NCBI GenBank assembly: GCA_047495785.1
Contig: JBLDXI010000046.1
Location: 1,757,301-1,821,300 of the forward strand
Length of the DNA: 64,000 nucleotides
Source of the DNA: Lepidodermella squamata
Lineage: Eukaryota; Animalia; Gastrotricha
Reading direction: 5' to 3'
Made by a program: the position numbers and the translations under genes. The notes below the pieces were generated by a model, which saw only the letters and a program-made list of their open reading frames with translations, did no database searches and was not told where the DNA came from. This document shows, one piece after another, positions 4,242 to 64,000 of the stretch (positions are counted from its first letter, which is position 1; the number at the start of each line of letters is the position of its first letter).

Positions 4242-7117
4242 TCTGATCCATTTACCCCGTTTTCGATTTCCTATTACCACTACTACTACTACTACTACTA
4301 CTATTACTCGCTTGATCAAACGTGAAACAACAAATAATCGAGACTTCAACAATAATAATAATAATTGAGCTCTGCGGCCCGCTTCATCGTCGTCTGTCGG
4401 TGTTTTGATATTCGTACCTCCCTCGTGTGTTTCATCCTCGTCGTCGTCAGCAACTGGGTCAGCCACTTGAGCTGCTGGTTTTTACCAGGTTTTACTCGCC
4501 AACCGCCGCAAAACGAGATAGTAGTTTTAATACCGAGTACTTATAGCACTCTTATTTTTGCTGAAATGAGCCTAGACGTTGTTTTACAATGTATACCCAC
4601 TGATTTTGCTTGTCGTTGTGGCCGCACAAAAAAGATGATGATTGTTTTATCCCTTGGAAACTTTGGCATGTTTCGTTCACCTGATACCGACGTGCATGCC
4701 TGAGCACAACCTGCGTGTTACAAATACTATAGATGATGTTGACGATGATGGAGTGTCAGAGAACAAAAAGAAATCCATACCTATATAATATTTTCTCGCA
4801 ACGAGCTTTCTTTCGAATGCACCGAGCGCGAATGTTGAGCGATGATGATGAACGGCTTCTATACGGATGATGATACCAATATTCGAACGCGCTTGGGCTT
4901 TTTACGTTTTTCTTGCTGATATATAAATACGTATATTATATTAGACTGAAGTAATTGAATGATAGAGCGTAAATACACACACACACACACACACGATTAT
5001 TTTTTCAAATTTATACGTGTGTTGTTGTTATTTGTTGATACATGTAAATACACATACATATTTTCGGATTCGCTTCGCATCGAGACGGCGGCCGACATCA
5101 ATTTTTTTGTATGATGATTATTATTGAAAATCGAGTCATTTCTTTCTCTCTCTTCTCTCTCTCTCTCTCCGTTCCGTCGCTCCACCTCGATGTATGCGTG
5201 TCGAATGAAACAACCATACGAAAAACTATGTGCAAGACGATATCTTTGCTATAAATATTACCTATCTCTTCTACTACTAAAAGAGTCAGTCATTTTCACT
5301 TTGATGATGATAATAAGTATTTTTCAGTCGCTACATAAAAACATTATATATGATTATATTTTTTGTTGTTGAAAAAAGTAACGGAAGGACAAAACACTAC
5401 CTGTGCTATCATTCATCATGTCTTGGTTTTTCCAAAAGCGCATTTCAAGTTGATTATTTCTGCTGTCACAAATCCAGTAATAGGAAAAATAATTACCTAA
5501 ATTGCGCCAAGAGAAGAGCAACGCCAATTCGATCGATAAATTCGATCGATTAGCTTGCTCTTTTTTTATTCGCGTGTTTTTTCATCATCGCAAAACAATA
5601 ATAATAATAATGAAGTCTAATCGTATTTAATGCGCTTATCAAATTTTGATGAACAGTGTTTCCTCCTTCGTCTCGTTCTGATTCAAAAAATGATACATCC
5701 ATACGTATATGAATAGAGAAGCGATTATATTTTATTACCACTATTGTACTCGAATGAATCCATGAAGATGAAGCCATGTTTCAAAAGCAAACAGAATATC
5801 TCGCGTTGATTGAAAAAAATCGCTACATATATACATACACTGAATACATAAATACATACATTATTTACGTTATTATTTGCTGGCCGTGTTACGGTCAAGA
5901 AGATTTGAAAAAACGGAGAAATTGAAATATTAAAAACGAATTGTTGAACTGGTACTACGGCGTTTTTTTATGTATTTATTGATTGCAATCCTGGAACATT
6001 TTGTATACTGCGCTTTTTCTACCTACCTATACGTTCCAAGTGTTTGAGCATCAGCGATGCGGAAGGCGATGAAAAAGTGCGCGTATCGGATGATGAGGTT
6101 ACGTGCGGAAACAAACCGTAAAAAATGTGTTGTTATGGCGCTTCCAGGTCTTTTCACAATCCCGCCGAGGTTACCCGAAGCCGATATTATAAAATAGGCC
6201 GGTGTTCTATTATTATAACATGCTGCTGCAGCGAGAGAAATAAATTGCTGCGCACACAATTTAACCTCACCTCTATACGATATAATTTGGTAGACCTACC
6301 TATGCTACATACATTTCTTACCAGCAGATCGTAGATGATTCAAATTCACTCAGCTATTGAGCAAAAAGTTTGAAAAGGTACACGAGCTTCACAAGCTTTT
6401 CAATAGCCAAATCACCGTTTATTACCTATTTGGTCCTTGATATCCAGACATGATTCCTAATAATAGATTCATTCTGCTAAAATATGAATGTGCACATAAA
6501 AAGGCTCATATCCAGGCAAGTTGCGCATTAATCGAACAATGTGATATAGGTAGCACGCACATGCAGTATTAATCACCGAGTGGCCGTCTCTAACAACACC
6601 CGCCGGTCTTCTTCTTCCTTCTCTTATTCTCCCTACCTAGTCTTCCATCTACTCTTCCCTTCTTCTTAGTTATCTTGCTTAGCTCTTCATTTCTTCCCTT
6701 TATAGAAAATTTCTGCTTTTATGAATCACTGACGCAAGCAATCAGCATTTGACTCATTTCAATTTTAAAATTATTAAGGCGCACTTTTTATTATAATATC
6801 GTTTGCTGTTTTACGCACACCGCAATTGAAACTTAGATTAAAAGTCTAATCGAATATCAGCAGGAGACAAGATCTCTTTCGCGATCTGTTCATTTCTGAT
6901 TCAAAACTTATCGTTTCTGAATCTTCCAATCTATCTTGCCAAGTAGCCCCTTTACCTACATAGGTATATTATCAACCCGTCAAGAGGAAAATGCCTCCTC
7001 CCTTCGCCCTTACGTAAAATTGTGAGAAAAGCTGCTAATATTCGCTGTCTTTTTTCACTTCAAAACGATAAGAATTGAGATGTTTCCTTAGCTGCTTTTA
7101 GAAAACAATTAGCATTC

Positions 7118-28754: not shown

Positions 28755-28818
28755 CCTAACCCTAACCCTAACACTAACCTCTAACCCATAACCTAACCTT
28801 AACCTTAATCTTGACCCT
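28755..28818 (-). repeat. Short degenerate (CCCTAA)n / (CCTAAC)n microsatellite
   Basis: cctaaccctaaccctaacactaacctctaacccataacctaaccttaacc; orientation opposite to the three TTAGGG tracts further right. Confidence 0.7.
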
Positions 28819-39340: not shown

Positions 39341-39682
39341 TCCACTTTTGTAAATTTACTTGCTCATTTTTTTCGCTTAATAAGTTACCCGCTGAATACG
39401 ATTAGCATATCGAGGTGCCCCTTTCGTTGTGCGAAAGCGGAATAGGTAATTAACTATGAGCACTTTTTACCTCCGGTTGAAAGCCCTTGAAAAACATTGT
39501 GGTTAATAGCAATCATGGAGCCACTAATCTAGTGCTGCTAAAAGTTCTGTTTTGGATCTACATTATAGGCTTTCCCATAAGCTTACTCTAATAATTAATT
39601 ACCAATATTGTTTTTACCTAGACAATTTATCAATTTTTTGGGCTCTTTGATATCGAGGCAGAAGACGATCGATACATTGGAA

Positions 39683-42352
39683 ATGATAAGTTTTCCTCTA
39701 ATAACGTTTTTGTTGTTCTGCTGCGCCCATTTCACGCTATGCTATCGGCCATCTACCATTCAATCATCAAATGCATGTGATACGCCGTGTAAAATATATA
39801 AGCCTTGGTTTTCAGCTGATTATTTCTACTGCTTTGTCGAACCTGTTGATTCAATTTACGGCGGCAAATTTGTCATCGAAGAACGGCACTACTGCTCTCC
39901 TCTAGAAAATGTCGACTTTCATGGAAATGCATGCAAACGGGACCATCCTTGTGGCTATCATGGCGAAGACTATACATGGTGTTATTTATCGGAAGGTTCC
40001 TGGGGTTATTGCTCTTTAGGCAACGTTTCATCGACGCCAATTGTTGCCGACAACGGATATTACTGCTCCTCCACTTCAGAGTGTAAAGGTCCTGACTTTC
40101 ATTGTTCCACTCGTAACGGTAGAGAGACAAGCAGCTGTGAACCAGGCAAAACAGATCATGTATGGGAGGACATCACGCTTTCTAAATGCTCTGTTGGTAA
40201 TCCCGGTTTTGCCATCTATAGTGCTCGACTGTCTATATTTGACGAGAAACCAATTTTGAGTTTGCCGCTATGCGACACGTTCCCGAATATAATGCTAGCT
40301 GATGGAAGAAATATTGGTCGCCATTTTCAATGCGGCCTTGAAAACTATAAAGATGTTATTGCGGAGTTTGAGACACCCTTTGATGTAGCGCTAGACCCGA
40401 AGTCAATTAGCAAAACAGATTCATCCTGTTACAGCAATGAGTGGGACGACACTTGCTCTGATCAAGATTCTGCCACAGGTCTGAGTCGCCCTAAAAGATC
40501 CCAAAAATGCCCTGGAGGCGATCAAAACACCGATTACTATTCAATCTCAGTCATACTGGCATTGATTCAGGCTCTCATAAACCAAAATCAACAGCCTATT
40601 TCACCCGAAAGCATACAAACACCTCGTGTGACACCTCGTTATACCCACGATTTTGTCGGCATCGAACAGACATCGAATTCATTTCGATACAATGGTAGAT
40701 ACGTTTTCAGATTTTTGCGCAGTGATATTCAAGAGCAACACATACAAGCGAGAAGGAATGGCTATCAACGAAAGCCTGATGAAGGCGACGGTCGTAACGG
40801 CCTAAGACCAGCTAATCCCAACGCAAGGTATACGCTTTTCCAGCACGTTTCAAACGGAGGACTTTCAACGCAGTTTATTTCAACAACCACTGATTTTGGA
40901 CGAACGCTACGTTTAGCTGCAGATCAGGCTTTAGAATATTTTAGCTCAGAATCTGTCTTAAATAATGGTCGAGGATTCAGTCGGTACTTCGTACAAATCG
41001 ATACTCGTGACTTGATAATCAACGATCTAACTAACGTTGTAACGGCTGAACGCAGCCTATCTAGCATTTATACTCCTTACTACGACGCGTATAGCAGAGT
41101 CGTTCGTCTAGCACGCAGCTGGTCGGAAATTGTCATTGAAGGCGAAGTTCCCCCTGAAAACATTGCCGGGATATTTGAAGTTTGCGCCGTCAACAGTACT
41201 CATGTTGTTGTAGTAGTTCATCGTGAAAGTCACCGTGATCTAATGAGACGCGATGAGATGCCAAACACTGTTGTTTGCAAAGCGGAAGACTTGCCAGTAA
41301 CACTACAAAATGGCTGGTTTGAAACACGTGAAGACCGTATCCCCGGAACATCAACGGCTTTTCAATGCAATTTTGGTTTCATAAAGTCAGGAACTTCACT
41401 TCCGGTAATAAAATGCCTGCCCGATGGAACTTGGTCTTCATTGCCTATTTGCGAGTCGATCATTGGTAGATGGAGCACAGTTTTAAAAACTGAGGGTTTT
41501 GACGAAATAATTGCATATTCGAGAAGCTACCCAGCTAATTTCGAAACTTTGATGCCTCAATTGATGACTGAACTTCATAATTCGCATCATCTTCTCACTC
41601 GATTTTTGGCTTTTCTCCCGCAATTGAATGATCAGCCGTTCATTGTTGCCCTCGACGGCTTCAATGTGAATTTCAGAACCGCCTTTTCATGGGAGTACGA
41701 CACATTATCGGCTATCACAAAGCGAATAGACGAGATTCGCTACAACGACTTGCCTGAACGCTATAGATTGATAATGGCAAGTATTAAACGGCAACTTGGT
41801 AGCAGTTTTTCCTTCTTGTTCTTAGATGGTTTTGGTGACAATAAATGTGCTGCAGGTTCGCGTCAATTTGAAGTTGGTTACATTAAGTTTCCTGAAGGTT
41901 ACGCCTCTCGACGTTTACATCTTTGTTTGCGGGGCCAATTCGATCCAGAAGGAGCTTTCGGAGGCGTTTATCAGTCATGCCCCAGTGATGTAACGCACGC
42001 TAGTCGTCCAAATCCCGTCACTGGAAGTTACAACTGCCCGAACGGTACAACGAGTTCTATATCGTTCAGAGTGATGCCTGGCGATACACATCTTTGGTCG
42101 GGATGCACACAACACATATGCTTCAACTACGTTCCAGGTGGAAGCCTGGGAGGCTTTTATCAGATAGTTGATTTGAATGGCAAGAAAAACAACGTTGTTA
42201 ACCCAGTAACTGGACAATTCAATTGTCCCGACGGTTACGTCAGCAATAAGTTTGGCCGCGTAATGGCACCTGATTATTACACATGGGGAACAAATCAATT
42301 TATTTGCCTCCGGAAAATTCGGTCTTTGAACTTCGAACTTCAAAATTCATAA
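39683..42352 (+). CDS. Intronless secreted multidomain protein: signal peptide, Cys-rich repeats, furin site, ADP-ribosyltransferase toxin-like domain, sushi/CCP, MPEG1(P2)-like C-terminal repeats
   Basis: Single ORF of 889 aa from ATG 39683. Signal peptide MISFPLITFLLFCCAHFTLC; HPCGYHGEDYTWCY...WGYC; RPKR at 40487-40498; YVFRFLRSD / FISTTTD / WSEIVIEGEVPPENI; CCP C..FQCNFGF...CLPDGTWSSLPIC; FGGVYQSC...NPVTGSYNCP and GGFYQ...NPVTGQFNCPDGY. Confidence 0.8.
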   Translation: MISFPLITFLLFCCAHFTLCYRPSTIQSSNACDTPCKIYKPWFSADYFYCFVEPVDSIYGGKFVIEERHYCSPLENVDFHGNACKRDHPCGYHGEDYTWCYLSEGSWGYCSLGNVSSTPIVADNGYYCSSTSECKGPDFHCSTRNGRETSSCEPGKTDHVWEDITLSKCSVGNPGFAIYSARLSIFDEKPILSLPLCDTFPNIMLADGRNIGRHFQCGLENYKDVIAEFETPFDVALDPKSISKTDSSCYSNEWDDTCSDQDSATGLSRPKRSQKCPGGDQNTDYYSISVILALIQALINQNQQPISPESIQTPRVTPRYTHDFVGIEQTSNSFRYNGRYVFRFLRSDIQEQHIQARRNGYQRKPDEGDGRNGLRPANPNARYTLFQHVSNGGLSTQFISTTTDFGRTLRLAADQALEYFSSESVLNNGRGFSRYFVQIDTRDLIINDLTNVVTAERSLSSIYTPYYDAYSRVVRLARSWSEIVIEGEVPPENIAGIFEVCAVNSTHVVVVVHRESHRDLMRRDEMPNTVVCKAEDLPVTLQNGWFETREDRIPGTSTAFQCNFGFIKSGTSLPVIKCLPDGTWSSLPICESIIGRWSTVLKTEGFDEIIAYSRSYPANFETLMPQLMTELHNSHHLLTRFLAFLPQLNDQPFIVALDGFNVNFRTAFSWEYDTLSAITKRIDEIRYNDLPERYRLIMASIKRQLGSSFSFLFLDGFGDNKCAAGSRQFEVGYIKFPEGYASRRLHLCLRGQFDPEGAFGGVYQSCPSDVTHASRPNPVTGSYNCPNGTTSSISFRVMPGDTHLWSGCTQHICFNYVPGGSLGGFYQIVDLNGKKNNVVNPVTGQFNCPDGYVSNKFGRVMAPDYYTWGTNQFICLRKIRSLNFELQNS

Positions 42353-42526
42353 GATTTTCATAAGATTTAATATCCCACTATTTCCCTCCCTAGCCTTGTA
42401 GTCGAACCCATATCTTGAATCGAATTATATTTCAGGTTGCATTATTAGCAGCTTGATTTAGCAGCAGAATCCTACAATAAAACAAACAAAAATGTCACAG
42501 CAAGTTTACTCAGCCTTATTATCTTT

Positions 42527-43255
42527 GGGGTTAGGGTTAGTATGGTTAGTGCTACGGTCCTTCGGTTCAATGTATTGTAAATTTTCAAGCAAAACTTTCC
42601 ACCCCGTGACCAAATTGTCACGGAGGTTCGTGCTGGTCATTGAGGCGCAGGCTTGACGCCACGCGTTGACGAATTCTTCGCGCGGTTCGCCGAGGTTGAT
42701 GCCGCGGGCCTTGCGGATGACCGAAACGGAGCTGCCTTGACCGCAGACGCTGTTGAAGGCGCGAGCGGTGTAGAGCGGTAGCGAGTCGGGGTCGCAGTAG
42801 CGGAACGCTTGCGACGCGTCCTTGTAGGCGAAGTACGCGGCACCTGCGTGAACCCAGCCGGAGCGGAGACGAAGCGAGGTGACGGTGGCGGCGGCGAAAA
42901 TGTCCCGTTCTTCAACGACTTTCGGGTCGTCGAGCGAGTCTGTAGGAAAGAATTTGTGCATGCCATTAATAAAATTTCTCTCATGTGGCGTGTAGCCGCC
43001 GCTGTTCACGGCCGTGCTAATGCGCGCACGAATAATAAAATGATTAATGAATGATGCAAGCTTGGCCTGATATCGCTCGAGGATATCGTGACGGTGCTGC
43101 TGATCGAGGCGTTGACGACGATCGATGGGCGGTGGTGGCGGAGGCGGCGGTGGCGCGTTTTTCGGAGCACGATTGCTCGACGCGTAGCGGTCTTCGCGGT
43201 AGCGGTAGCGGTCTTCGCGGTCTTGATGACGGTCTTCACGGTACTGGCAACAGTC
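42527..43255 (-). mobile_element. Fragment of a second, divergent family of the telomere-associated Penelope-like element (ORF1 N-terminal domain only)
   Basis: The frame is open across the fragment and aligns by eye to ORF1 at 56152-58647: QHRHDILERYQAKLASFINHFIIRARISTA vs EHRQDLLDRFREKLNNFIHHFFILAKLATA; T.HE..KFFP; DA.QA..YC.P; R.FN.V; V.RK; GW; DRS...NPN. Confidence 0.85.
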
Positions 43256-43293
43256 GGGGTGGGTTAGGGTTAGGGTTAGGGTTAGGGTTAGGG
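43256..43293 (+). repeat. Interstitial telomeric tract (TTAGGG)5 capping the fragment
   Basis: ggggtgggttagggttagggttagggttagggttaggg directly abuts the 5'-truncated end of the ORF1 fragment. Confidence 0.92.
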
Positions 43294-44064
43294 CCGATCA
43301 TTGGCCGATCTCCAGTCAAGACTTTGCGGTTTTGATGAGTTTTAATTTTCGTTATTTTTATGCGAGCAAGCTATTCATTTTATCGGTGCATCACGGGATG
43401 GAGGATTGCCTCTCTGGTCTTTTTTACAGGTTCATTTTTTTCTGACTTGTTCTGTGACTTTCCAGAACATTCTTTTCTTCATGTTCGGGAAGGATAGGTT
43501 TTGGTTGGGAAATTCATGTAATGTGAATGTCTTGCATACTCTTGCTCACTCTTTGAGTACAGCGAAAATGGTGTAAATTGAAAATATTACACGAAACAGG
43601 CGGAATTCGTCAAGTTTTCCAGGTGGAATCTCTCGGAAATGCATTCGGAAATGCTGAAAAACGATTTCCTTGCAACTTGTTTAAAACCTGGCTAAAATGC
43701 TTGAATCCTGCACGACATAACTTGAGTTAGAATGCCGGATGTAGCCTGATTCCGGATGTATTTAAAATCACAGCCTCATTAAAATCGGTCATCAGATTTT
43801 TCTTAATTGCACACAACATTACATCTGAAAACGACAAAATTCTCCATATAACGCGGAATTTTCTGTGAAAAATTGTGAATCTTAGGACGGTCATATCAAC
43901 TATTTTCATGAACAAACTAGTTAAAATGTTGAATAAAAATGAGCTGCGATGCAAGCGGTGACTAGCCAACAAAATAGAAAGCATGTAATAGAATGTAATA
44001 AGCCACCGATTTAGATTACATTTGCGAAGAGTCCACGTTAAATTACTAGTTTAATCACATTTTA

Positions 44065-47000
44065 TCATACAAGTTCACCGAGCGCAATAAGCAGTTCGTC
44101 AAAGGACGGTCGCTCTGTTTCAGGACATTTCCAGCACGGCAGCATTATCTCGTTGTACCTATGCATTGTTTAAAATTTATATATTTTCGTAAATTAAAAA
44201 TTTGGCGAGCCAATTGCACATCCTGAAATTGAGACCCTAGCAGTAAATTTACGATAAATTCAGTTGCGATGACCACGTTAGATGAGCTATGGTATCAATT
44301 CCAGAATCGATATCGATTGCACTTATCGATTTCACAAATCAGTGATTTTTCGATATCGGAAGCTCAGAAGTAATGGTACCAGAGAGTTTTGGGCTTCTAA
44401 AACTAAGAGTCACGGAACATCACAGAGAGTATCATTAGTAAAAGAGACTAGACAAACGGGAAATTCCAGATTGTCGTGAAAAATAGTGCTGAAACCCTTA
44501 TAATCAATGCTGGAATTTCAATTTCAGTGGTGCACTTATTCAGACTCTTGAAAAACCACTAACATGATTTCAGGACAAAGATCAGGCTTGCCCAGCCGCA
44601 GTCCGTTCGACACTTGAACGATAACTTCAAAATTATTCAGCTCAGCGTAAGGCTCATCTCGGCAAACTAGTTATCAATAAATTTCTGTATACGCAATTCA
44701 CTTTTAAGGTTAAATTCAATCTTACGAGTGTAAATCTCCCACATAACGACGCCGAAAGACCATACATCACTTTTTGGGAGAAAAACCTGCGAACAGAGCG
44801 ATTCGGGAGGGTACCAGCGTAAAGGAATCAAGCAGCCGCGCGCATCGTTAGATCGATAGTACTCATGATCAGGTGGAATTACTCGAGACAATCCAAAGTC
44901 AGAAATCTTCAAAATGCAATTATTCGACACCAAAATATTGCGACACGCCAAGTCTCTGTGAAGGCAATTACGGGAGGAGAGATAAGCCATTCCACGGCAG
45001 ATTTGAATGACGAAATCGAGCAGTTGTTTCTGCGCCAAGTTTTTAACTTCCAATGTAGCGAGATGGCTTCGTAGATAGCCTTTTTCCATAACAGGGACAA
45101 CAATGTTAGGATGGCCGTCGATGAACGCTATGCCTATAAGTGGAAGGATATTTTCGTGGTCGAATTCCTTCATAAGAAGTGCTTCTTTGACGAATGAAAT
45201 CAAGTCGCTACTTGCTCCGGGTAGGACGGTCTTAACAGCAACTTCAGCTAGTTCACACCCTGGATTTTGGAGATAAGCCTTATGAACCGCCCCAAATGTC
45301 CCGTGGCCGATTAACTCTTCGATTTTCAGCCATGAGCATGGAATATTCATTGTCGCGATTTTCGGAGTCAAATCCCGAGCTTCAACTGATGCCTCAAGAT
45401 ATTGTTCGAAATCACGGAATGGCATTATATAATCAGGATCTGGAATGTTTTCTAGTTTTTCCTGCTTCTTAATAAAGGATTTTCGGACTCTCATCATGAA
45501 GCACCAAGTTGCGATTCCGATTAAAACTAGTGCTAAGCCGGTTACTGCGAATGCTAGGATTATGGTGATATCAGCTTATAAAAAAAGATAATTAGAGGTG
45601 CAAGTGTTTGAAGAATCATTCTTACGAGTAGGAGGATCTGCTGATGTAAAAGCACTGTCGATCTCAGAATCTGTCGAAGCTGGAAAATCGGTAGGTGTTA
45701 CGTTTATAGGGCTGTTTAGGGATTTTGGACATTCCAGGCCTGAAACTGTCATTGAACTGCAGGCTACAGTTTGTTGGATCCAGCTGTTAAGGCGATGTAA
45801 ATTCAGAAAACGGATGTACTTAGACGAGGAGCAGTTTTCACTTCCAAGGTACATTCCTACCTAGAAATGGTCAAGTAAATGTAAGCCATAACGTAGCCGT
45901 ATTCAGGTACTTATCAAATTTCTAAATTTACTAATTGAATTTTGGATAAGGTCAGGAGAAGGTCTCCGATTCCCCGTATTTCAAACATGGGAATACTAAC
46001 TTGCTCAAATAGGAAAATTGCAAGTGTTTTGTCATAATTCGGAGAAATCCAAGGGAATTGCTGGCCTAGCATTATTTCACCCTGAAGCTTCAGAATTTTA
46101 GAATTTTCAATTTTCATTTTCAATTTCAAGCAACCAGCTCGACGTCTCAAATTTGCTATAACTTGGATTCGCCCAAGATCCCTTGTGCGAAACTTTAGGG
46201 GAAGAAACTGTTTTTCATGGGCTTTCCAACGTTGTAAGATATGTAGAAATCGGAGCCAAAATGACTGCGCTGCGTAGAAATAAAGTCTGCTCAACATTTA
46301 TGCCCCATACTGTATATTTAGAAGCTTTTACTCAATTTTCATCATAATTTGAAGATAATTTTTCAGCATTCAAATAGACACCTGGGAAGGTTTGTTTCTT
46401 CCCTGAATTTTTTCCCTCCTACTCTGTATGGGACCAGGCGTTGAAGTAAACTCACCAAAACAGCCCGATAATCGACACCGCGTACATAATCCAGATCAGC
46501 GTCCAACCTCAGTATGGAGCCTTCTACCAAGTCACACGGTTGAAACGGAATATTCTTATCATAGATCGGTTGATAGCACAAATACATGTCACTTTCACAT
46601 CCTGGTATTGCAGTTGTAAGACTTCCAGGTCGGTACTTGTAAACTGCGTCATTGAGGCACGGTCTTGCAATGCTCGACGAGCATCCACCGAGAAGGTAAA
46701 TAGCAACATTTTGTTCCCACCAAAGGTCTACCGTTTCAACGTGCTTTGTGAATAGGCCTATGTTGTTAGTTACTTTTGGATTGATCTCAGCTCTCTTATC
46801 CAGCCTGATTATGGCAACCCCGCTATTTGCGCCAATAATTTGAACAGATGAATTTGAGAGGGATAAAGCGCATTTTTCAGTCGTTAAAAAGTTATGCTCG
46901 TCCAAAATTGCAGCGCTACATGTCTCGGTGGCTGGTTGAAGGTAGGGAAACCATGAACTCGGCGCTTCGCCTTTCGCATAGCCTCCAGTTATTTTAATCG

Positions 47001-50000
47001 ACAACGGCTGGCCAGCCATGAATTTAGGAGAAATTTTCAGACGACATCCATCGTGCACTTGCAACAACTCATCAAATTTCAAAGATGTTACGTAAATCGA
47101 TAGGCAGGAGATGCCGTCCAATCCATTCCCACTCAAAGTCAAGTTTACCATCGAAGTAGGCTTGAATGTCGTCTCGTTGGTGGAATACAACAAACCAAAG
47201 TTGTTGTAAATAAAAAGCTCTTTCAGATCGCTAATGACACTTATAAATGCCCACTCGTCGTCTGACACTGCCTTCACGAGAGGAAAATTTGTCATCCTGT
47301 TTTGAAGGTTTAAATTGCCCTGGTCATCTATCCATAAGTTGAGAGAGTAACTTTGCAAGTTCAGAAGATCTCGAGCGATCTTGCGAGCATTTTTCAGCAG
47401 GAAAAACGAAACTGTTACTCCAGAACTTGCTTCAACGGGAAGTTCCACTTCGGTAATGCGGACGAGGTCCTTAGAAACTTTAACGCCTGCGTTTTCGACT
47501 CCAAACGGCCCTGTTATGAAATCAGTCGCTTCGTGCTCGCTTCGGAATCTAAGTGGTCCCATATCGCGGTTCCCGCTCGCTTTGTCAAACGGCCATACAG
47601 CAATGAGAGAATAAGGTTTGGCGTATGGTAAATCTTAAAAAAACAAGTCATCATAGGACAGTAAAGGTATGTAATAGGCATATAGAGAAAGATAAGATCA
47701 GACAGAGTAAGAACTCCCAGTAGAAATTTGAGTTGCTCTTTGAGATGGCGCAAAATTTGAGGACGGAAAATACTCATGGGCAAAACAGTAACTAAAATGA
47801 CAGAACCCCCTTAATTATAACAGCCATTCCGCGAGTCATCTTGAAAAAAATTGTCCGGCCTAAAATTTTGATTGATCTTGAAGAGCAACTCGAATTTGAT
47901 CAGCCTGCAAACGGGCATGAAAATCGAGGTGAGACGATTAGAGATTAGAGAAATCTTATTGCAAAATTAATTTTAAGGAGGAGTCCTTACTCTGATCATT
48001 TCTTTCTCTATGGAGATAGGCTTACCCAGCGAAATCGAGAAAATGTCGATAGCGTCTGAATTTATAAGCTGCTCAACTTGGGAGCTAACTTCTGCCTCGG
48101 ATTTGTAGCCTCTGTACTTCAGCGCTAGATAAACGGGAACTTTGAATGTCACGAGGATCCGTTCGCATTTCAAAGCGCCGCATTTGACTTGGTAGCTGCT
48201 TATTTCAATTATTCTAGCTGTTGACTTGCGTGACACGTTGGCCGAGCTTATTAAACCGTTAATCTTGAAACAAGTACAAAATATTGAAGAGTGGGCCTCG
48301 TGCTAATGAACCGCCAAAATTGAGATTACTCAATAATTCCTTTAGAGGACTGCGCACGATCTTGAGAGGATAAAAATTTTGAAAATACCTCCTTATACTC
48401 GAAGGTTCAGAGTTCAGAGTTTTCTTAATACTTTCATAGCCAACCGAGAAACTAGCCGTATCGTGGGCTCTATTTTACATAGTACTCGGGAGGAAGCTGT
48501 TACCCTCTTCGTTTTACGTGTGTAAACACCCCTAAAAAATGCGAAAAATCACATAGGAAGAGCGATTTCGCGAAAATAAAAAATCTATCTTAAAACTAAA
48601 AAGCGAAAAATGTGCAATCTGGTTATGTATTCTGAACCGCGTTGCTAAAAGCGCAATTTTTTAGAGTTTCTAAGCCGGCTTCTGTGTCCGGAACATTAAA
48701 AAATTAGCGAATCTTTGAGAATCATTCGCTTCAACTCATCTAAGTAGGGATGTTAATTATTTTGATGATTACCAAAAATGCATTTTCTTTGCGATTTTGG
48801 AATATAAACTGAGATGACTAGAAGGCTTTTCTCGTGATTGCAAGGTGTTGACCTTGTAGTAAACATTATCAATCTATCTTTGCTCTGCCGAAATAATCAG
48901 ACGATAGGGCGTTCGACGGTCGCAGCACAGTTTGCAATCGTTTTTCTCGCTCCGCTCGAAAAAATTCAAGTTCTATAGCACACTGCCTACGTGCTACGTG
49001 TGTGCTACGTTCGGCCTATCTCGCTTTGCTCGATCGAAAACCTTGCCCTGTGATGCTCGCTTTGCTCGCGTTCCGCGGCAAGGTTTTCGGTCGCTGAAAT
49101 GCATTGCTCGCTTCGCTCGCGCCTTTTAAAAAATCCAACTTAAAAGTGTTATTATGCAAAATTACTATGTTTACTATGTTTACTATTTACCTTGCGAACG
49201 CCACAGCCGATTAGCCGTTCAGCTCTTCGAATTATCAGCTAAACCGCCATCGAAAACTTGAAAATTCGCGAACGTTTCAATAGAGCAAAAATCACCAATT
49301 TTAGAATTCATAACACCCCACGTTAATTTCGATTAGAATAACAGGATTTTTTATACATTTCATGTTATCACGGAAGAGGTGACAGAAAAGCTGCATTTAA
49401 AAAAGGGCTATTTTCATTGCTAAGCTAAAGCAAAAGATTGGAAATTTGAAATAAAACTATCAAGGCGGATTTTTTATTTCCTAAATTTGCATGTTGCTGG
49501 TGCTGGTGTTAGTAATTTTTACCCTGTTTTATCAGGTTAGGTGACAGCTTCCCCTCGAGCAATATGTACAATAAACCGCATAATAACCCTCGGCTCGCCT
49601 TGTTGCGAAGCGCAGTCGTAGGCGTGGAGGGCGAGGTGGACGTAGCCGCGGACAGGAAACCATCGAAGGAATATTGCCAGCGGATTAAAAAATGTGTTCA
49701 ATTTACTTGGTACAGTGAAACCCCGATTTGGCGTCATCTACGGGCCGGCCAAAAAATCGGGCGGGAAATCCGAAAAGACGGATAATCCGGGTCAATTTAC
49801 ATGCAATGCTATGCTGCGGGGAAAAACGAAGATTTTTCATCCCCTTATCTTTTGCATACCCGGATTTCCCGTAGACGGAAAATAAAAGGACGCCAAATCG
49901 GGGTTTCACTGTATATTGATCAAATCTTGGCAAGATGAAAAAAGACGTTGGCACAGAAAAAGATGTTGGCAAGATGAAAAAGACACAGCCCCCCTAGGGC

Positions 50001-52580: not shown

Positions 52581-52731
52581 GGGGTTAGGGTTAGGGTTAG
52601 GGTTATTGGTAATAGTTTAATGGGGTTAGGGTTAGGGTTAGGGTTTGGGGTTAGGGTTGGGGTTAGGGTTAGGGTTAGGGTTAGGGTTAGGGTTAGGGTT
52701 AGGGTTAGGGTTAGGGTTAGGGTTAGGGTTA
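52581..52731 (+). repeat. Telomeric (TTAGGG)n tract, proximal anchor of the retroelement array
   Basis: Two TTAGGG runs with TTGGGG/TTTGGGG variants, separated by a short spacer (~52605-52621). Confidence 0.95.
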
Positions 52732-53702
52732 ATTAGTAAGCTGCGGTCCGCCTGTATTTTGTTTTGCGCAAGGTGATAAGTAAAAGCCTGCCAGCCCTTC
52801 GTAACGTTGGTGAGCAAGTCAGGGCTGCGCATGGCGCGTTTCATTTCGTTGCAGGCGCATTGAAATTGTTCGTAGATCGCCGGCCAGTAGATGTTGCTCG
52901 ACTTGCGCAGGACTCGTAGCACGCTGTTGCTGCTCGCGACAGTGTTGAAGACCCGCGACGTTTGGGCCGCTCTGTCCGACGGATGGCAGTAGTTTGCTGC
53001 TTGGCGTGCATCGGTGAACGCACTTTCGAGAGCTTGCTCGTGTCCTGTCATGGATTTATGACGTATCTCGGAAACAACATTGTAAAAAAGCAAATCAACG
53101 ATGCCCTGAGTGCTAGCTTCGAACCGATGCTCGCGCGGGAAGAACTTCTCGAGCACTGGCCGGAGTGCCTTCTCGTGAGCGGTGGTGGGTCTCTCGTTTT
53201 GAGGTTTGGCGTAGTCTTCACTGAAGTTGGCTGTGGCGAGCTTGGCTAAAATGAAGAAATGATGAATAAAATTGTTGAGTTTCTCGCGGAAGCGATCGAG
53301 GAGATCTTGTCGATGTTCCCTCGCTCGACGTTGCCCTTCTGCTGCTGCCTTAGAAGGTAGCTGCCCGTTGTCCGTTGAGTCTTGCGGTCGCTTCGTACCA
53401 TCCGCGTGCCGACGGTCTGACTGAGCGTTCGAACCAGACCCGTGCGAGCGACTGGAGCGGCCGTGCGTAGCACCCTCGTGCGAACGGTAAGATCGAGTGT
53501 TCGAACTGGACGCTGCTGCGGAGACTGTCTGTTTCGAGCGGCTTTGATGACGATCGCGCCGTTCTTGTTGATAGGGCGGATTGTGACGACTCGAGTTGTA
53601 ATAGACGTAGCGGAAGCGGCCAAAGATGGCCCGTCCCGGGCGGTCGTTGTTAATTTCTGTAAACCCGTTGTTATTAGAAACAAAACGGTTACGGTTAGAC
53701 AT
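52638..53702 (-). CDS. ORF1 truncated at the telomere junction, reading into telomeric repeats as poly(Asn-Pro), 354 aa
   Basis: Identical to the ORF1 N-terminus up to ...DRSLLINPN, then (NP)n from CCCTAA repeats. Confidence 0.7.
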   Translation of the reverse strand: MSNRNRFVSNNNGFTEINNDRPGRAIFGRFRYVYYNSSRHNPPYQQERRDRHQSRSKQTVSAAASSSNTRSYRSHEGATHGRSSRSHGSGSNAQSDRRHADGTKRPQDSTDNGQLPSKAAAEGQRRAREHRQDLLDRFREKLNNFIHHFFILAKLATANFSEDYAKPQNERPTTAHEKALRPVLEKFFPREHRFEASTQGIVDLLFYNVVSEIRHKSMTGHEQALESAFTDARQAANYCHPSDRAAQTSRVFNTVASSNSVLRVLRKSSNIYWPAIYEQFQCACNEMKRAMRSPDLLTNVTKGWQAFTYHLAQNKIQADRSLLINPNPNPNPNPNPNPNPNPNPNPNPNPNPKP

Positions 53703-54479: not shown

Positions 54480-56306
54480 CTAGCAGTCTTTCGTTCGGCA
54501 GAGTTGCTTGACAACGCTTGGACCGAGTCGGGTGACGAGACGAATGCGTCGCCGGCGTGCGATGTCGTACAGTGGCTGTAGTGGCCGAACGAACTTCGTT
54601 TCGACCGGTGGTCGCCAGTCTTGTTGGTAGCGAAAGTTGTCGACACGATTGCGTAGGAACGGCCAGTCTTGACCTTCGCAACTTGTGATGACGTCGTGGG
54701 CGAGCGCAAAAACATCTGCGTCGACGTAGCCGTACTTGGACGCGGAACTGGCGAGGCTAAAAATGGCAGAACACAAGTCTTCTGTATTATTGCAAATTCT
54801 TAAAAAGTTTAAAATGCGCCCTGTGACTGCGGCCCGGAGAGTCGATTCTGGGTGATTGGAGTCAGCGTGTAAGAGAGGCAACGAGTTCATGGGCTTGAAG
54901 TAAACGCCGGTTCTGATGGAGCCATCGGGGTACTTGCTCAGGCGGACGTCGAGAACATTCGCACGCTCGGAGCTGATCTCGACTTCGAGCTTTATACGTG
55001 GATGTAGTGCGCCGTATTCGTTGCCTAGCGTGACTGCGGCCTCTTGAGTGGTGCAGATTGCGAAGACGTCGTCTCGATACCGTTTGAACAACATCACGTC
55101 GGTTTGGCGTTCGACCAGATCGCGCTCGAGCACATAGAGGAACGCGTCCGCTACGACTGGGGCACTGTTGGAGCCCATCGGAATTCCGTGCACCTGACGA
55201 TACTGAATGCCTGAAAAATAGAAAATGTTTGAATTAAGTGTTATTTCGAGCATTGCGACGACGAGGTCGCGTTCGGGTGCGGTTCCGATTGCGTTCTCGT
55301 CCAACATGGTCTTGATCGCTGCGATTCCTTCTCCAATCGGTACGTTGGTGTACAAGTCGCTCACGTCTGCGGTAAAGAACGTGACGTCGCACCCGCTTGA
55401 GTCGATTGCGCGAACAGCGTGTAGTAGGTCGATGGTAGACGAGGCACAGGTAGTCATGAACCGGTTAAGCGGTTTGCAGTAAGCTGCGGCGACCTTGTCT
55501 GCGGCGGCGAGCGCTGTGCCCAAACAGTCGACAATCGGCCGAATTTTCGGTAGACCATCTACGTCAAATGCCTTGTGCATTTTTGGTAAAAAATAAATAT
55601 GACGATCGCGGGTTGGCTCGAGATCGAGCCCGCGTAACAGCTTGCGTTGTGCGGCTGTACCGGTTGCCATAACGCGGTCGACGAGAGTCTTCATTGCTTC
55701 GAGGCCTCGCTTCTCTTCTGATTCTTCGGCGTGCACATAGTTCGCTGTAGTGAGATGTTTGAGCGCCATTTTCGAGTAGTTCGCCTTTGACATGTAGACC
55801 ATCGCTGCACCTTTGTCAGATTTCTTGAATACGCCGTCTTTGCGGAGGGCGCGTAATCGTCGTAGCTGTGGGTCGTCGACGATGGGACCGAGCCGTACTG
55901 TGCGAGCTGGCTGTGCGTGGCGGATAACGACTTGTCCGTGGATCCCGATAATCGGACCAACGAAGCGCTTTGAGAACGCTACAGAGGGAACCTTGACGTC
56001 GAGGCCGTGGTCGGGACGAGGGACGACGGTTGCGCCAAGGAGATCTGAAATGACATTAACACAGGCAATTTTATCTTTTTTCGTGAAATTAATGATTTTA
56101 AGGCCACGCTCGAGTGCCTGTTTCTCGGCTGGCTGGAGAGTTCCCGTCAGGTCAACGACGGACGGTAGAGAACAGCGATGCAGCGTCCCGTACGCTCCGT
56201 TTTGGACTAGGGATGGGATGGCCCTGAGCCCGAGCGATCCCGCGAAACCGCGACGCGATGTCTGCGTGTCTGTCTCCTTTTTCGTGCTTCTCGCGGATGT
56301 GTGTGA
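54480..56306 (-). CDS. Penelope-type reverse transcriptase, copy 1 (stop-to-stop frame; first ATG at 55802)
   Basis: VVDLTGTLQPAEKQALERGL (PLE N-terminal motif), KKSDKG, YFLPKMHK, RPIV, ADVSDLYTNVP, QVHGIPMGSNSAP, YRDD, thumb YFKP...SNHP. Confidence 0.95.
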   Translation of the reverse strand, partial: SHTSARSTKKETDTQTSRRGFAGSLGLRAIPSLVQNGAYGTLHRCSLPSVVDLTGTLQPAEKQALERGLKIINFTKKDKIACVNVISDLLGATVVPRPDHGLDVKVPSVAFSKRFVGPIIGIHGQVVIRHAQPARTVRLGPIVDDPQLRRLRALRKDGVFKKSDKGAAMVYMSKANYSKMALKHLTTANYVHAEESEEKRGLEAMKTLVDRVMATGTAAQRKLLRGLDLEPTRDRHIYFLPKMHKAFDVDGLPKIRPIVDCLGTALAAADKVAAAYCKPLNRFMTTCASSTIDLLHAVRAIDSSGCDVTFFTADVSDLYTNVPIGEGIAAIKTMLDENAIGTAPERDLVVAMLEITLNSNIFYFSGIQYRQVHGIPMGSNSAPVVADAFLYVLERDLVERQTDVMLFKRYRDDVFAICTTQEAAVTLGNEYGALHPRIKLEVEISSERANVLDVRLSKYPDGSIRTGVYFKPMNSLPLLHADSNHPESTLRAAVTGRILNFLRICNNTEDLCSAIFSLASSASKYGYVDADVFALAHDVITSCEGQDWPFLRNRVDNFRYQQDWRPPVETKFVRPLQPLYDIARRRRIRLVTRLGPSVVKQLCRTKDC

Positions 56307-58647
56307 TCAGACCATTGATTGAGCAGCTCTTGCCGACGTGGCCGCATCGTTTGCCGCTCGGTAGCTTGAAAGCGCACGACCACTTGCCGTTGTGAAACTC
56401 GACGAGTATCGACGGATCGCGTATCTTTTCTTTCTTCCACCATTCGCGGGTGAACTCTGCTTTGCTCAAGTTCTTCTGTATGGCGTAGTCTTGCTTTGAT
56501 AGCGTGGTCGTCGTATCACCCTGCTCTTGACGGACCGACTGAGCGTTCGAACCGTGCATCGGTGGGTTGTGCGCAGGCGGTCGCGATGCCGGTGCCAGGC
56601 GTTTGAGACACGTTCCGGGTTGCCCGTACATTTGTTGCGCCGAGATCGCTTTGACGACGGCGGGCTTCTTGGACGGCGCCGGAAGTTCTGTTGGTGACTT
56701 GTCTTTCGGGCTGGTGGCACGAGCTCGCTTGGTGGGCACCGAGGCGTTTGGCGCACCTGGTCGAGGAGCGTTCTGCGAGACCGCGTTGATCGCTTCACCG
56801 AAGAACGAGGCGACCGAGCTGACATCTGAAATAGAATTGCAATTATTAAAACGAGATTCGACATTGGCTGCAGCTGCTGCTAGCGCGGTGTCGCTGGCAC
56901 TGTCGATCGGTGAAGCGTCCTTGCTCGGAGTCTGAGGCAGAGGCGCGGACGTGGGCGTTAACTGGGCTGCTGTCGATTTGTCGGCAGTGACCGTTTGTGG
57001 AGTAGCCGGGCGGGCTACATTGATAGTCGTTGAGTGGTCGGCGGTCGCCGCTGAATCGCGGCTGCCACCGTTCTTGGTAACCAAGTTGCTAGCTTCAGAA
57101 GTTGACCGAGCGGTAGTCGACGCTGAACCGCGACTGTCAACGCTCTTTGAGACCAAGTTGCTAGCTTCAGAAGTTGACCGAGCGGTAGTCGACGCTGAAC
57201 CGCGACTGTCATCGCTCTTTGAGACCGAGTTGCTAGCTTCAGAAGTTGACCGAGCGGTAGTCGACGCTGAACCGCGACTGTCATCGCTCTTTGAGACCAA
57301 GTTGCTAGCTTCAGAAGTTGACCGTGCGGGAATCGAGGCCAAATCGCGACCGAGACCTCTCTTCGGTACCAGTGCGTTGATCTGAGCGGTTGAACGTGCG
57401 GAAATCCAGGTCGAATCGCGTTCTTCTGTGGTGAGCAAGCCCCAATCACCCGGGCTCGGATGGCCAGTCTGAGCGGTTGAACCGGGAGCCGCCTTGGGTG
57501 TCGGTGGTAACGCTTGACGAGCTGTTTCTGATTGACCTGTCGGCGTAACCGGATTGACGGCCGGGTCGCTTACGACCATCGGCGACGAAGACTGAATGGT
57601 GTCGTGCGCTTCAACTGTTATGTTGACAGGTGCTTCCCTTGGGGAGGCATGGACCTGAGAAAGAGAGTTAGGGTTAATTAGTAAGCTGCGGTCCGCCTGT
57701 ATTTTGTTTTGCGCAAGGTGATAAGTAAAAGCCTGCCAGCCCTTCGTAACGTTGGTGAGCAAGTCAGGGCTGCGCATGGCGCGTTTCATTTCGTTGCAGG
57801 CGCATTGAAATTGTTCGTAGATCGCCGGCCAGTAGATGTTGCTCGACTTGCGCAGGACTCGTAGCACGCTGTTGCTGCTCGCGACAGTGTTGAAGACCCG
57901 CGACGTTTGGGCCGCTCTGTCCGACGGATGGCAGTAGTTTGCTGCTTGGCGTGCATCGGTGAACGCACTTTCGAGAGCTTGCTCGTGTCCTGTCATGGAT
58001 TTATGACGTATCTCGGAAACAACATTGTAAAAAAGCAAATCAACGATGCCCTGAGTGCTAGCTTCGAACCGATGCTCGCGCGGGAAGAACTTCTCGAGCA
58101 CTGGCCGGAGTGCCTTCTCGTGAGCGGTGGTGGGTCTCTCGTTTTGAGGTTTGGCGTAGTCTTCACTGAAGTTGGCTGTGGCGAGCTTGGCTAAAATGAA
58201 GAAATGATGAATAAAATTGTTGAGTTTCTCGCGGAAGCGATCGAGGAGATCTTGTCGATGTTCCCTCGCTCGACGTTGCCCTTCTGCTGCTGCCTTAGAA
58301 GGTAGCTGCCCGTTGTCCGTTGAGTCTTGCGGTCGCTTCGTACCATCCGCGTGCCGACGGTCTGACTGAGCGTTCGAACCAGACCCGTGCGAGCGACTGG
58401 AGCGGCCGTGCGTAGCACCCTCGTGCGAACGGTAAGATCGAGTGTTCGAACTGGACGCTGCTGCGGAGACTGTCTGTTTCGAGCGGCTTTGATGACGATC
58501 GCGCCGTTCTTGTTGATAGGGCGGATTGTGACGACTCGAGTTGTAATAGACGTAGCGGAAGCGGCCAAAGATGGCCCGTCCCGGGCGGTCGTTGTTAATT
58601 TCTGTAAACCCGTTGTTATTAGAAACAAAACGGTTACGGTTAGACAT
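56152..58647 (-). CDS. Full-length ORF1 of the Penelope-like element, 831 aa (basic N-terminus, conserved helical domain, S/T/A-rich linker, C-terminal C2H2/BED-like zinc finger)
   Basis: Intact ORF directly upstream of and overlapping the RT frame; WSCAFKLPSGKRCGHVGKSCSINGLITHIREKH; homologue at 42527-43255. Confidence 0.85.
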   Translation of the reverse strand: MSNRNRFVSNNNGFTEINNDRPGRAIFGRFRYVYYNSSRHNPPYQQERRDRHQSRSKQTVSAAASSSNTRSYRSHEGATHGRSSRSHGSGSNAQSDRRHADGTKRPQDSTDNGQLPSKAAAEGQRRAREHRQDLLDRFREKLNNFIHHFFILAKLATANFSEDYAKPQNERPTTAHEKALRPVLEKFFPREHRFEASTQGIVDLLFYNVVSEIRHKSMTGHEQALESAFTDARQAANYCHPSDRAAQTSRVFNTVASSNSVLRVLRKSSNIYWPAIYEQFQCACNEMKRAMRSPDLLTNVTKGWQAFTYHLAQNKIQADRSLLINPNSLSQVHASPREAPVNITVEAHDTIQSSSPMVVSDPAVNPVTPTGQSETARQALPPTPKAAPGSTAQTGHPSPGDWGLLTTEERDSTWISARSTAQINALVPKRGLGRDLASIPARSTSEASNLVSKSDDSRGSASTTARSTSEASNSVSKSDDSRGSASTTARSTSEASNLVSKSVDSRGSASTTARSTSEASNLVTKNGGSRDSAATADHSTTINVARPATPQTVTADKSTAAQLTPTSAPLPQTPSKDASPIDSASDTALAAAAANVESRFNNCNSISDVSSVASFFGEAINAVSQNAPRPGAPNASVPTKRARATSPKDKSPTELPAPSKKPAVVKAISAQQMYGQPGTCLKRLAPASRPPAHNPPMHGSNAQSVRQEQGDTTTTLSKQDYAIQKNLSKAEFTREWWKKEKIRDPSILVEFHNGKWSCAFKLPSGKRCGHVGKSCSINGLITHIREKHEKGDRHADIASRFRGIARAQGHPIPSPKRSVRDAASLFSTVRR
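57080..57325 (-). repeat. 72-bp (24-aa) in-frame tandem repeat in ORF1, ~3.4 copies; same repeat at 62025-62270
   Basis: ARSTSEASNLVSKSDDSRGSASTT repeated; CAAGTTGCTAGC at 57082 and 57154 gives the 72-bp spacing. Confidence 0.92.
57667..57676 (-). other. Internal telomere-complementary site (RNA 5'-UAACCCUAAC-3') within ORF1; putative primer-annealing site
   Basis: GTTAGGGTTA at 57667-57676 corresponds exactly (offset 4945) to the telomere/element junction at 52722-52731. Confidence 0.85.
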
Positions 58648-62522: not shown

Positions 62523-62561
62523 GGGTTAGGGTTAGGGTTAGGGTTAGGGTTAGGGTTGGGG

Positions 62562-62602
<41 letters not shown>

Positions 62603-62700
62603 GGTTAGGGTTAGGGTTAGGGTTAGGGTTAGGGTTAGGGTTAGGGTTAGGGTTAGGGTTAGGGTTAGGGTTAGGGTTAGGGTTAGGGTTAGGGTTAGGG

Positions 62701-62741
<41 letters not shown>

Positions 62742-62810
62742 GGTTAGGGTTAGGGTTAGGGTTAGGGTTAGGGTTAGGGTTAGGGTTAGGGTTAGGGTTG
62801 GGTTAGGTTA
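62523..62810 (+). repeat. Telomeric (TTAGGG)n tract, ~290 bp, capping the 5'-truncated end of the array
   Basis: Continuous TTAGGG with occasional TTAGGGG/TTTAGGG/TTGGGG variants; non-telomeric DNA resumes at ~62811. Confidence 0.96.
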
Positions 62811-63791
62811 ATTACCAGACGGGAAGCCTAAGCAACCCCGGCATAAAAGCTCTAGCGATCCCTTTCACTCTAGCAACGGTGAGAGGAGAGTAAACCACTT
62901 TTTAATCTGTGGATTAGCAGCAGAGTAAGGTGATGGGCTAAACCGATTTCAATGATCAATTGAAATAAAGGTTGAACGTAAGTCGTGCGTGGAACCATAA
63001 CTTAAAGTTCCATCCAGACAAAAGCCTTAATTGAACCCGAACCATAAGATTGAGGTTAACCGATTGACTCCACATTTGGATTAGTAGTGAGCTATGTCAG
63101 TACCGCATCTAGGGTTTGTTGGTATCGTAGTCCCGGGAACAACCATTAGTGTGGTCATTAGACTCACTACACTCATGAACGATCAATTGACTGTGCGTGC
63201 ACAGGCAATGACGACGGATTGGAATCATTCTATGATCCACTGATGCTTAGACTTTCCCACAACAGACAGTAAAAAGTTGATATAAGTTTGTTGTAACTAG
63301 GGTAGAGATTATCAAACTGTCATCTATCGTTTGTATGTAGAGAGTTCGAGGATGAAATATCTTATCCAGCGACAGGAGTAAGAAACCTCGATTCAAAGGA
63401 ACACGATGGACAACAACATATCGGATGTCTCGGACTACTAAACGAGATGATCTCAATAGAGACCAATAGACAATGACGCATGTTGTGTATTTAGAAACCA
63501 TGGCCAGAGAACAGTGAACTTTAACAGTTAACACTAAAGCTGCAAATACACTGAGTAGTGAACCTTAACTCTTAGCCTGTAGCCTGCGGCTAATTAACTT
63601 TAAAGCATGTCAACTCTTGGAAATAGGCCAAGTTCAAGCAAAATATTACGAAAATTATATCAAATCTTGAAAGAATTTCGCGCCAGAACCCACATGGCAC
63701 TAACATTTAAAGAACGTAAGATAACGCGGTTTGTAAGGCCGTGCTTTGGAGAAATTCTGTCATTCGAGTGGATTTTGTTTTGAGCAACTAA

Positions 63792-63845
63792 AGTCACTGA
63801 TGAGCCTGCTGCCCACAGGCGAAACCGGTCTGACTATTCTGGGCG
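63792..63845 (+). ncRNA. Type I hammerhead ribozyme of a different family, with a possible loop II pseudoknot
   Basis: AGTCA-CTGATGA-GCCTG-CTGCCCA-CAGGC-GAAA-CCGG-TC^TGACT; helix I 5 bp, helix II 5 bp, palindromic helix III; loop TGCCCA complementary to downstream TGGGCG (63840-63845). Confidence 0.9.
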
Positions 63846-64000
63846 TTGCGTATTTTCCATCGTTTACTTGTGATATCCTGGGCCATCCTTCCATGGGTGG
63901 TGCTTTTCCTTGTTGCTCCCCTCAATGGGTGGCTTGTACTCATTGTGCTCCCCTATACGGGTGGCATTTCATGTTTGCTCCCCACTCTCACGAGATGTGT

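Follow-up and report, generated by a model that had tools for sequence, protein, structure and literature searches.

Penelope-like elements that lack the endonuclease (EN- PLEs) attach to G-overhangs via reverse-complement telomeric repeats located beside a hammerhead motif (PMC8557442, PMC6431247); the resulting copies are 5'-truncated by telomeric repeats, and host genes are captured between the elements (PMC6431247). The reverse transcriptase (RT) of an endonuclease-bearing (EN+) PLE has been shown in vitro to initiate internally, within the 5' part of the ORF, which gives rise to the PLE 'tail' (PMC11167929). A short palindromic helix III in the hammerhead is a hallmark of PLEs (PMC4209133), and the RTs of these elements form the sister group of TERT (PMC8557442). 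The elements described here belong to a clade that, judging from the organization of its copies and by analogy with the described systems, appears to combine telomere attachment, capped 5' truncation and internal initiation.

The window analyzed here comprises the terminal 64 kb of C46, a 1,821,300-bp contig from an animal genome of 121 Mb. It contains three tracts of telomeric repeats (43261-43293, 52582-52731 and 62523-62807), all with the G-strand TTAGGG sequence on the + strand and directed towards the contig end. Between the tracts 52582-52731 and 62523-62807 lies, on the minus strand, a near-dimer of an endonuclease-free PLE (the main family), in the order truncated ORF1, RT, full ORF1 (831 aa), RT, and a final piece of ORF1 that runs, as ...LLINPN, into the telomere tract. 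This last piece, the main-family tail (52732-53702, minus strand; ORF1 codons 1-327), adjoins the (TTAGGG)24 tract at 52582-52731 and ends at the same Asn-Pro-Asn (NPN) that is encoded by the motif TAACCCTAAC in the intact main-family ORF1 (57667-57676, minus strand; Asn325-Pro-Asn). Assignment of these and the following elements to EN- PLEs is based on domain content, the hammerhead in the repeat and the tandem tail organization.

Several other features of this part of the window can be mentioned. The segment 59889-63060, comprising the distal element, the telomere tract and its flank, is present as a 100% identical, inverted copy at C21:2671036-2674207, which could reflect either a palindromic chromosome end or an assembly duplication. 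A non-coding sequence (GGTTAATTACCAGACGGGAAGCC...) that follows the telomere tract is shared between window positions 62808-64000 and contig C57 from 207857 onward (L028:3858-3900), and is probably a telomere-attached non-coding passenger element. A canonical-looking hammerhead with a real helix II (CTGATGAG-CCTG...CAGG-CGAAACCGGTC) is located on the + strand at ~63795-63835.

Proximal to these elements, the initial annotation described an open frame at 42527-43293 as homologous to the N-terminal domain of ORF1, and this homology is borne out. On the minus strand, the frame is uninterrupted from 43297 to a stop codon at 42506-42508 (263 codons), and the 251-aa translation of 42509-43261 aligns with residues 124-311 of the main-family ORF1 (56155-58647, minus strand) at 32% identity over 188 aa (BLASTP E value 1e-25). 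In both proteins, NPN is located 14 residues past the last aligned Leu (fragment aa 242; main-family aa 325). According to blastn, BLASTP and dN/dS, the segment 42525-43243 (minus strand) is a 5'-truncated tail of a distinct endonuclease-free PLE family, denoted family B. The homology with family B at the DNA level spans exactly these coordinates, so the start originally placed at 42527 was correct within 2 nt. The fragment covers approximately ORF1 codons 83-321, that is, the N-terminal helical domain up to Asn-Pro-Asn-Pro, and is 89.0% and 89.8% identical to the family B copies on contigs C57 and C21, respectively, over 729-732 nt (blastn).

At the 3' end of the fragment, identity to the full-length C57 ORF1 extends through the 13-mer CTAACCCTAACCC (42528-42540, minus strand; codons ..T-N-P-N-P) and then ends, in agreement with the earlier placement of the end at the NPNP motif. 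From its position in the copy, this telomere-complementary motif would be the start of cDNA synthesis. The left junction reads GGGGTTAGGGTTAG on the + strand, of which the element shares just 13 nt (GGGTTAGGGTTAG); the first G of the junction, at 42527, is neither telomeric nor element sequence, and the six codons (KDNKAE) that follow NPNP in the frame of the fragment are host DNA. The truncated 5' end carries a (GGGTTA)5.5 cap at 43261-43293 (TRF, 100% matches, and pattern search), which lies on the + strand with its G-strand towards the contig end, like the arrays at 52582-52731 and 62523-62807 and as previously annotated. The 17 nt between the start of the homology and the cap (43244-43260, minus strand) do not align with family B in DNA comparisons and represent either filler or diverged low-complexity ORF1 sequence. 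The 12-mer TTAGGGTTAGGG has a chance expectation of 0.00 occurrences, and the 10-mer GTTAGGGTTA, expected 0.07 times in the window, occurs outside the tracts only at 42530, in the fragment, and at 57667, in the intact main-family ORF1.

Comparison of the fragment with C57 yields a dS of 0.20 and a dN/dS of 0.145, whereas dS between C57 and C21 is 0.03, which indicates that most of the divergence arose under selection. The fragment thus stems from a separate active sublineage of family B and not from long decay in place, an origin that also accounts for its frame being still open. The 263 open codons and the low dN/dS would also be compatible with a host gene domesticated from the ORF1 N-domain, but a low ratio is equally expected from pre-insertion divergence between active sublineages. 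Furthermore, there is no AUG near the start of the frame, the first start-like codon being an internal GTG; the frame ends in host DNA six codons past the junction; and the possible RNA run X2 shows no coverage of it. We consider domestication extremely improbable.

The initial annotation further anticipated a full sister element that continues past NPN and possesses its own hammerhead and an endonuclease-less RT, and such an element was identified. A six-frame search of the genome with the fragment as the query recovered three close copies (92-100% aa identity), other families at 48-62%, and the main family at 33-34%. The complete family B element (C57:201751-207783, minus strand) consists of a (TTAGGG)12 cap, a 5'UTR of ~270 nt, ORF1, RT, a UTR of ~1 kb, the tail and (TTAGGG)6, with a hammerhead-like motif 28 nt upstream of the ORF1 AUG and a second hammerhead in the ~1 kb UTR. 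ORF1 of this element (701 aa) continues beyond NPNP as ...FLSQVRVPPR, homologous to ...SLSQVHASPR of the main family, the corresponding motif regions being ...DRSTNPTNPNPFLSQVRVPPR in intact C57 ORF1 and ...DRSLLINPNSLSQVHASPR in the main family. The tail comprises ORF1 codons 1-321 and ends at NPN beside (TTAGGG)6; over 1230 nt it matches the element's own intact ORF1 at 100% identity, and it diverges exactly after CTAACCCTAACCCT. The RT frame (about 602-603 aa) lacks an AUG, is in the +1 frame and overlaps ORF1 by 137 nt. Both the sister RT (30.2 bits, cut-off 29.6) and the main-family RT match RVT_1, no Pfam match to GIY-YIG was detected in the RT frame of either family (608 aa in the main family), and both frames terminate in ...CRTKDC. 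There is no further ORF of at least 200 aa in the C57 element. The RTs of family B and the main family are 74% identical, whereas the ORF1 proteins share just 31-35%, so that the characterization of family B as highly diverged applies to its ORF1 and does not extend to the RT. An additional family B copy, C21:2653278-2657980, carries (TTAGGG)8 at NPN; its flanks differ from those in the window, which identifies it as an independent insertion, and the possibility that it is an allelic or homoeologous counterpart of the fragment was rejected on the same grounds.

Two features of family B deserve separate mention. The AUG-less RT frame overlaps the end of ORF1 in both families (155 nt at window positions 55803-56306; C57:205411-205547), suggesting that the mode of RT expression, be it recoding or reinitiation, is conserved between them. 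In addition, the sense strand of family B contains a G-strand-like motif, GATTAGGGATTAGGGATTA, which precedes each hammerhead by ~230 nt (positions 7-20 and 4817-4830, element sense, in L053, that is, C57:201600-207900); one of its copies is situated directly at the capped 5' terminus of the full element. This motif, which is absent from the main family, could form base pairs with AACCCUAAC 1.2 kb downstream.

All tail junctions examined, more than 12 in this genome and four in other samples, fall at NPN. In family B, three copies end in the same nucleotide window (the fragment, C57:201751 and C21:2653290); the main family contributes junctions at window position 52732 and C20:10475, family C at C20:16854, C41:1727 and C20:12381, and contig C15 at 5215376, 5212653 and 3519773. 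With the C57 and C21 tails stopping at NPN beside six and eight TTAGGG repeats, respectively, the proposal that a sister family is primed at the same coding position gains support. The motif occurs once per ~5-kb unit. Copies are found at the ends of contigs C46 (the window), C20, C41, C21 and C15, in consistent orientation throughout, and 5' caps are present at 43261-43293 (the fragment), 62523-62807 (main family), C41:1165-1218, C20:15935-16006 and L055:1-30. The junction at C15:3519773 belongs to a decayed family-C-like ORF1 tail (C15:3519773-3519961; L018) that contains stop codons and an internal deletion and ends in ...DRSNPNP followed by about two telomere repeats; its position, 3.52 Mb into the 5.2-Mb contig, makes it a second interstitial relic.

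Conservation of the motif was traced in 18 RT relatives from public assemblies (25-62% identity) and in ORF1 proteins from a profile search, which together provided 11 elements covering the position. One of the 18 RT relatives combines RT with a C-terminal GIY-YIG, the EN+ PLE architecture. Ten of the 11 elements carry NPN at the corresponding end of the ORF1 N-domain. In all nine of these for which DNA is available (L045, L046, L047, L048, L049, L051, L052, L054 and L055), it is encoded by AAC CCT AAC; in P0020, NPN at the homologous place is known from the protein alone. The remaining element, L050, retains 10 nt complementary to the telomere, but shifted in register (CCT AAC CCT A) and translated as PNPT. 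Given NPN, the probability of AAC CCT AAC under each lineage's own codon usage is 0.11-0.25, although the lineages are related and multiplying these values overstates their independence. In an alignment of nine sequences, with identity to the fragment down to 16%, three of the eight invariant columns are N-P-N. Tails from other samples also end at NPN followed by CCCTAA repeats (L048, L054, L055 and P0023), and L055, which is capped on its 5' side as well, is an exact analogue of the window fragment. The suggestion that the arrangement is old and conserved is thus corroborated, with the same codons retained in elements from other samples down to 16-27% ORF1 identity.

The profile and structure searches recommended for the shared helical domain were performed. 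With the nine-sequence alignment as input, AlphaFold predicts a confident all-helical domain (mean pLDDT 85.7, pTM 0.78) that ends at residue 187, followed by a disordered stretch directly before NPN (residues 188-199, pLDDT <50). No matches were obtained for ORF1 in Pfam, or for its N-domain in a word-indexed protein search and an ESM Atlas feature search, and Foldseek against PDB yielded no fold match (best E value 0.64); a profile search of 1.84 billion representative proteins returned eight matches, all to the same ORF1. Given these null results, the helical domain has no known relative. The combination of an invariant tripeptide, fixed codons and a predicted disordered linker suggests that the constraint on the motif looks like one acting on the RNA.

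These observations bear on the possibility that the NPN junctions are secondary products of recombination or deletion events involving a telomere tract and the ORF1 motif, with NPN retained for protein-related reasons. Microhomology-mediated deletion could make use of the 10-14 nt that are identical to the telomere repeat, and NPN is invariant in the protein. However, the codons are fixed (AAC CCT AAC), and in L050 the nucleotides are preserved although the residues differ; the motif is located in a predicted disordered linker; and every examined tail junction is at the motif, including that of the tail that is 100% identical to its full ORF1. Moreover, if an end had eroded as far as the motif and then healed, the part of ORF1 left behind would be the opposite side and not the N-terminal tail. 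A secondary origin of the junctions is therefore very unlikely.

A hammerhead-like motif, detected by pattern and covariation and hence putative, is present 11-73 nt upstream of the ORF1 AUG in 10 of the 11 elements scanned; the candidate in L048 shows poor helix I pairing. It consists of a CUGANGA core, 4-6 nt in place of helix II, GAA, and U or C at the presumed cleavage position; helix III is a 6-nt palindrome (ACCGGU, ACUAGU or ACGCGU), and helix I is 6-10 bp long and differs in sequence in every lineage. Rfam models detect no hammerhead either in the whole window (gathering threshold) or in the C57 loci (E-value scan), which is attributable to the missing helix II. The hammerhead and the telomere-complementary motif are both present in every lineage, with ~0.8-1 kb of ORF1 coding sequence between them.

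Copies of this clade share a common plan: a 5'UTR with the minimal hammerhead, ORF1, RT in the +1 frame, a second UTR with a hammerhead, and an ORF1 tail. The tail includes the first ~250-325 codons of ORF1 and always stops at the RNA motif (U)AACCCUAAC, translated as Asn-Pro-Asn. We propose that base pairing takes place between this motif and a G-rich 3' end of DNA, as a rule the TTAGGG overhang, and that reverse transcription starts at the motif, inside the RNA, in a telomerase-template-like alignment. At the present site, cDNA would have been started at the motif on a DNA end 175 bp beyond a host gene, synthesis would have halted after ~720 nt, and the new end would have received TTAGGG repeats. 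The genome contains a TERT candidate (Telomerase_RBD, E value 1.2e-15), which makes capping by telomerase plausible. The orientation of the element in the terminal 64 kb of C46, minus strand and 3' end proximal, is the one that G-strand extension would produce. We consider it likely that 42525-43243 is a dead-on-arrival family B copy that was started at the NPN motif, stopped and capped, probably at a former chromosome end.

A stronger version of this mechanism can be envisaged, in which the in-frame AACCCUAAC is a true telomerase-like template within a coding mRNA and the RT also copies the motif reiteratively, making some of the TTAGGG caps and inter-element tracts. We give this version little credence; if true, the clade would be a living intermediate between a retrotransposon and telomerase.

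The surroundings of the fragment constrain its history. Proximal to 42.3 kb, the window contains host genes for a NatA auxiliary subunit, LARP1, a myosin tail and a 914-aa Sushi-containing protein. The gene for the latter (39608-42352) is followed by single-copy host DNA at 42353-42527 (+ strand), its 3' flank or UTR, which ends in ...ATCTTTG, so that the left junction is 175 bp past the stop codon. On its priming side, the fragment is not bordered by a telomere tract; all 13 telomere-like letters there are the element's own. The priming model proposed earlier for this copy is thus upheld with respect to the start point of the RT but not with respect to the telomere as the primer: the fragment shows where reverse transcription began, and the primer would have been either a broken or eroded end with microhomology of at most a few G's, or a tract that later disappeared. 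Beyond the cap, the terminal array is preceded by 9.3 kb of single-copy DNA that carries three genes, and the fragment is now located 20.7 kb inside the contig. Because both this gene-containing segment (~9.3 kb) and the array that is terminal today are distal to it, the fragment most likely marks a former chromosome end.

Three further observations were made in the window. A degenerate C-strand telomere-like tract (28755-28808; CCTAAC-type, ~9 units, 82% matches) lies between host genes, with a polarity opposite to that of every other tract in the window. A ~60-bp dispersed repeat at 44300-44360, similar to a piece of a MITE or SINE, is represented in the genome by at least 40 copies (81-96% identity) and has a very high k-mer depth in the reads. 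Finally, a 399-aa ORF at 46363-47562, without a Pfam match, is the lone subtelomeric outlier of a family clustered on contig C31 (>12 copies, 31-42% identity).

Because the distal sequence is joined to the fragment through a short telomeric repeat, a mis-join of the assembly at these 33 nt was considered, which would mean that the fragment is not truly beside the sequence from 43294 onwards. Short-read contigs do break at 43251-43299, and none bridges the right junction. By contrast, the left junction is spanned without differences by a short-read contig (41000-42608) from public run X1, which possibly derives from the same sample as the assembly; contigs of run X2, possibly RNA, cover 41000-42465 and stop there. 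Read depth is equal on both flanks of the fragment (about 47-48), and 33 nt is short for a long-read assembly with 1.8-Mb contigs. A mis-join is accordingly highly improbable.

Another reading holds that the site was never a chromosome end and that cDNA primed on the left end served to patch an internal double-strand break that had occurred between two convergent host genes, the (TTAGGG)5 having been either copied from the RNA of a capped truncated copy or added before end-joining on the right side. The single-copy host sequence on both sides of the fragment and the lack of a telomere tract on the priming side are compatible with such an event; capped truncated tails usable as templates exist (C41:1165-1790 and L055), and the second relic is 3.52 Mb inside a 5.2-Mb contig. 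Nevertheless, no master copy with the same truncation point is present in the assembly, the window is the terminal 64 kb of the contig with a cap whose polarity is that of the true terminal arrays, and Terminon arrays are described as trapping host genes between telomere-attached elements (PMC6431247). We regard patching of an internal break as possible but unlikely. Both flanks are single-copy in the genome, with no paralogous site and no close paralogs of the neighboring proteins, and no read joint that skips the fragment, as expected for an empty allele, was detected in public short reads. The direct joining of the fragment to unique DNA suggests that the start site may also serve non-telomeric ends; such use would amount to chromosome healing.

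By analogy, the elements described here appear to behave like Athena, Terminon and Coprina, with which they share the defining features except for the adjacency of the telomeric motif and the hammerhead. As in Athena/Terminon of bdelloid rotifers (Gladyshev & Arkhipova 2007; Arkhipova et al. 2017; as summarized in PMC8557442 and PMC6431247), the RT lacks GIY-YIG and is preceded by ORF1, a hammerhead motif lies in the terminal repeat, and the elements are located at chromosome ends with the 3' end proximal and marked by a short reverse-complement telomeric stretch (PMC8557442, PMC6431247); likewise, the stacked copies are 5'-truncated and telomere-capped, with host genes between them (PMC6431247). 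Three differences stand out: the telomere repeat is TTAGGG here but of the TGTGGG or TGAGGG type in Athena/Terminon; the pairing motif is directly downstream of the hammerhead in Athena, whereas here it is ~0.8-1 kb further, as an in-frame Asn-Pro-Asn of ORF1; and, compared to Athena, the hammerhead here has only 4-6 nt in the place of helix II. Coprina elements of fungi, protists and plants are also telomere-associated EN- PLEs, often in hosts with TTAGGG-type repeats, and pair via a reverse-complement repeat, but the host in the present case is an animal, as genes of the tyrosine kinase and Sushi-domain types in the window show. The hammerheads of fungal and protist elements are monomeric, with a large helix III (PMC4209133), whereas here helix III is a short palindrome.

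In Poseidon, as proposed here, the RT starts inside the RNA, at a site that is downstream of the hammerhead repeat and falls in the first part of the ORF (PMC11167929); a start within the ORF implies that each copy ends in a coding 'tail', both in Poseidon and in the present clade. The Poseidon start, however, is 111-118 nt into the ORF, at an AC-rich stem-loop without homology to the nicked target (PMC11167929), whereas the start here would be ~750-980 nt into ORF1, at a telomere-complementary site, and involves no endonuclease. The predicted pairing resembles that of telomerase, in which an RNA-internal motif with complementarity to ~1.5 telomere repeats anneals to the G-strand 3' end. Unlike in telomerase, synthesis would run kilobases into the element's own mRNA rather than halting at a template boundary, and the template is protein-coding.

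The clade offers a link between the 'tail' of nuclease-bearing PLEs, telomere-primed insertion and the internal template of telomerase, and its pairing site is conserved in nucleotide sequence among families with no more than 16-35% identity in ORF1. This provides a testable handle: synonymous recoding of three codons should abolish priming while leaving the protein unchanged, and, if priming at the motif is true, DNA primers ending in TTAGGG repeats or in ...CTTTGGGG should start there. Attachment to telomeres by nuclease-free PLEs is known; what is new in the elements described here is that the pairing site is inside the coding sequence of ORF1.
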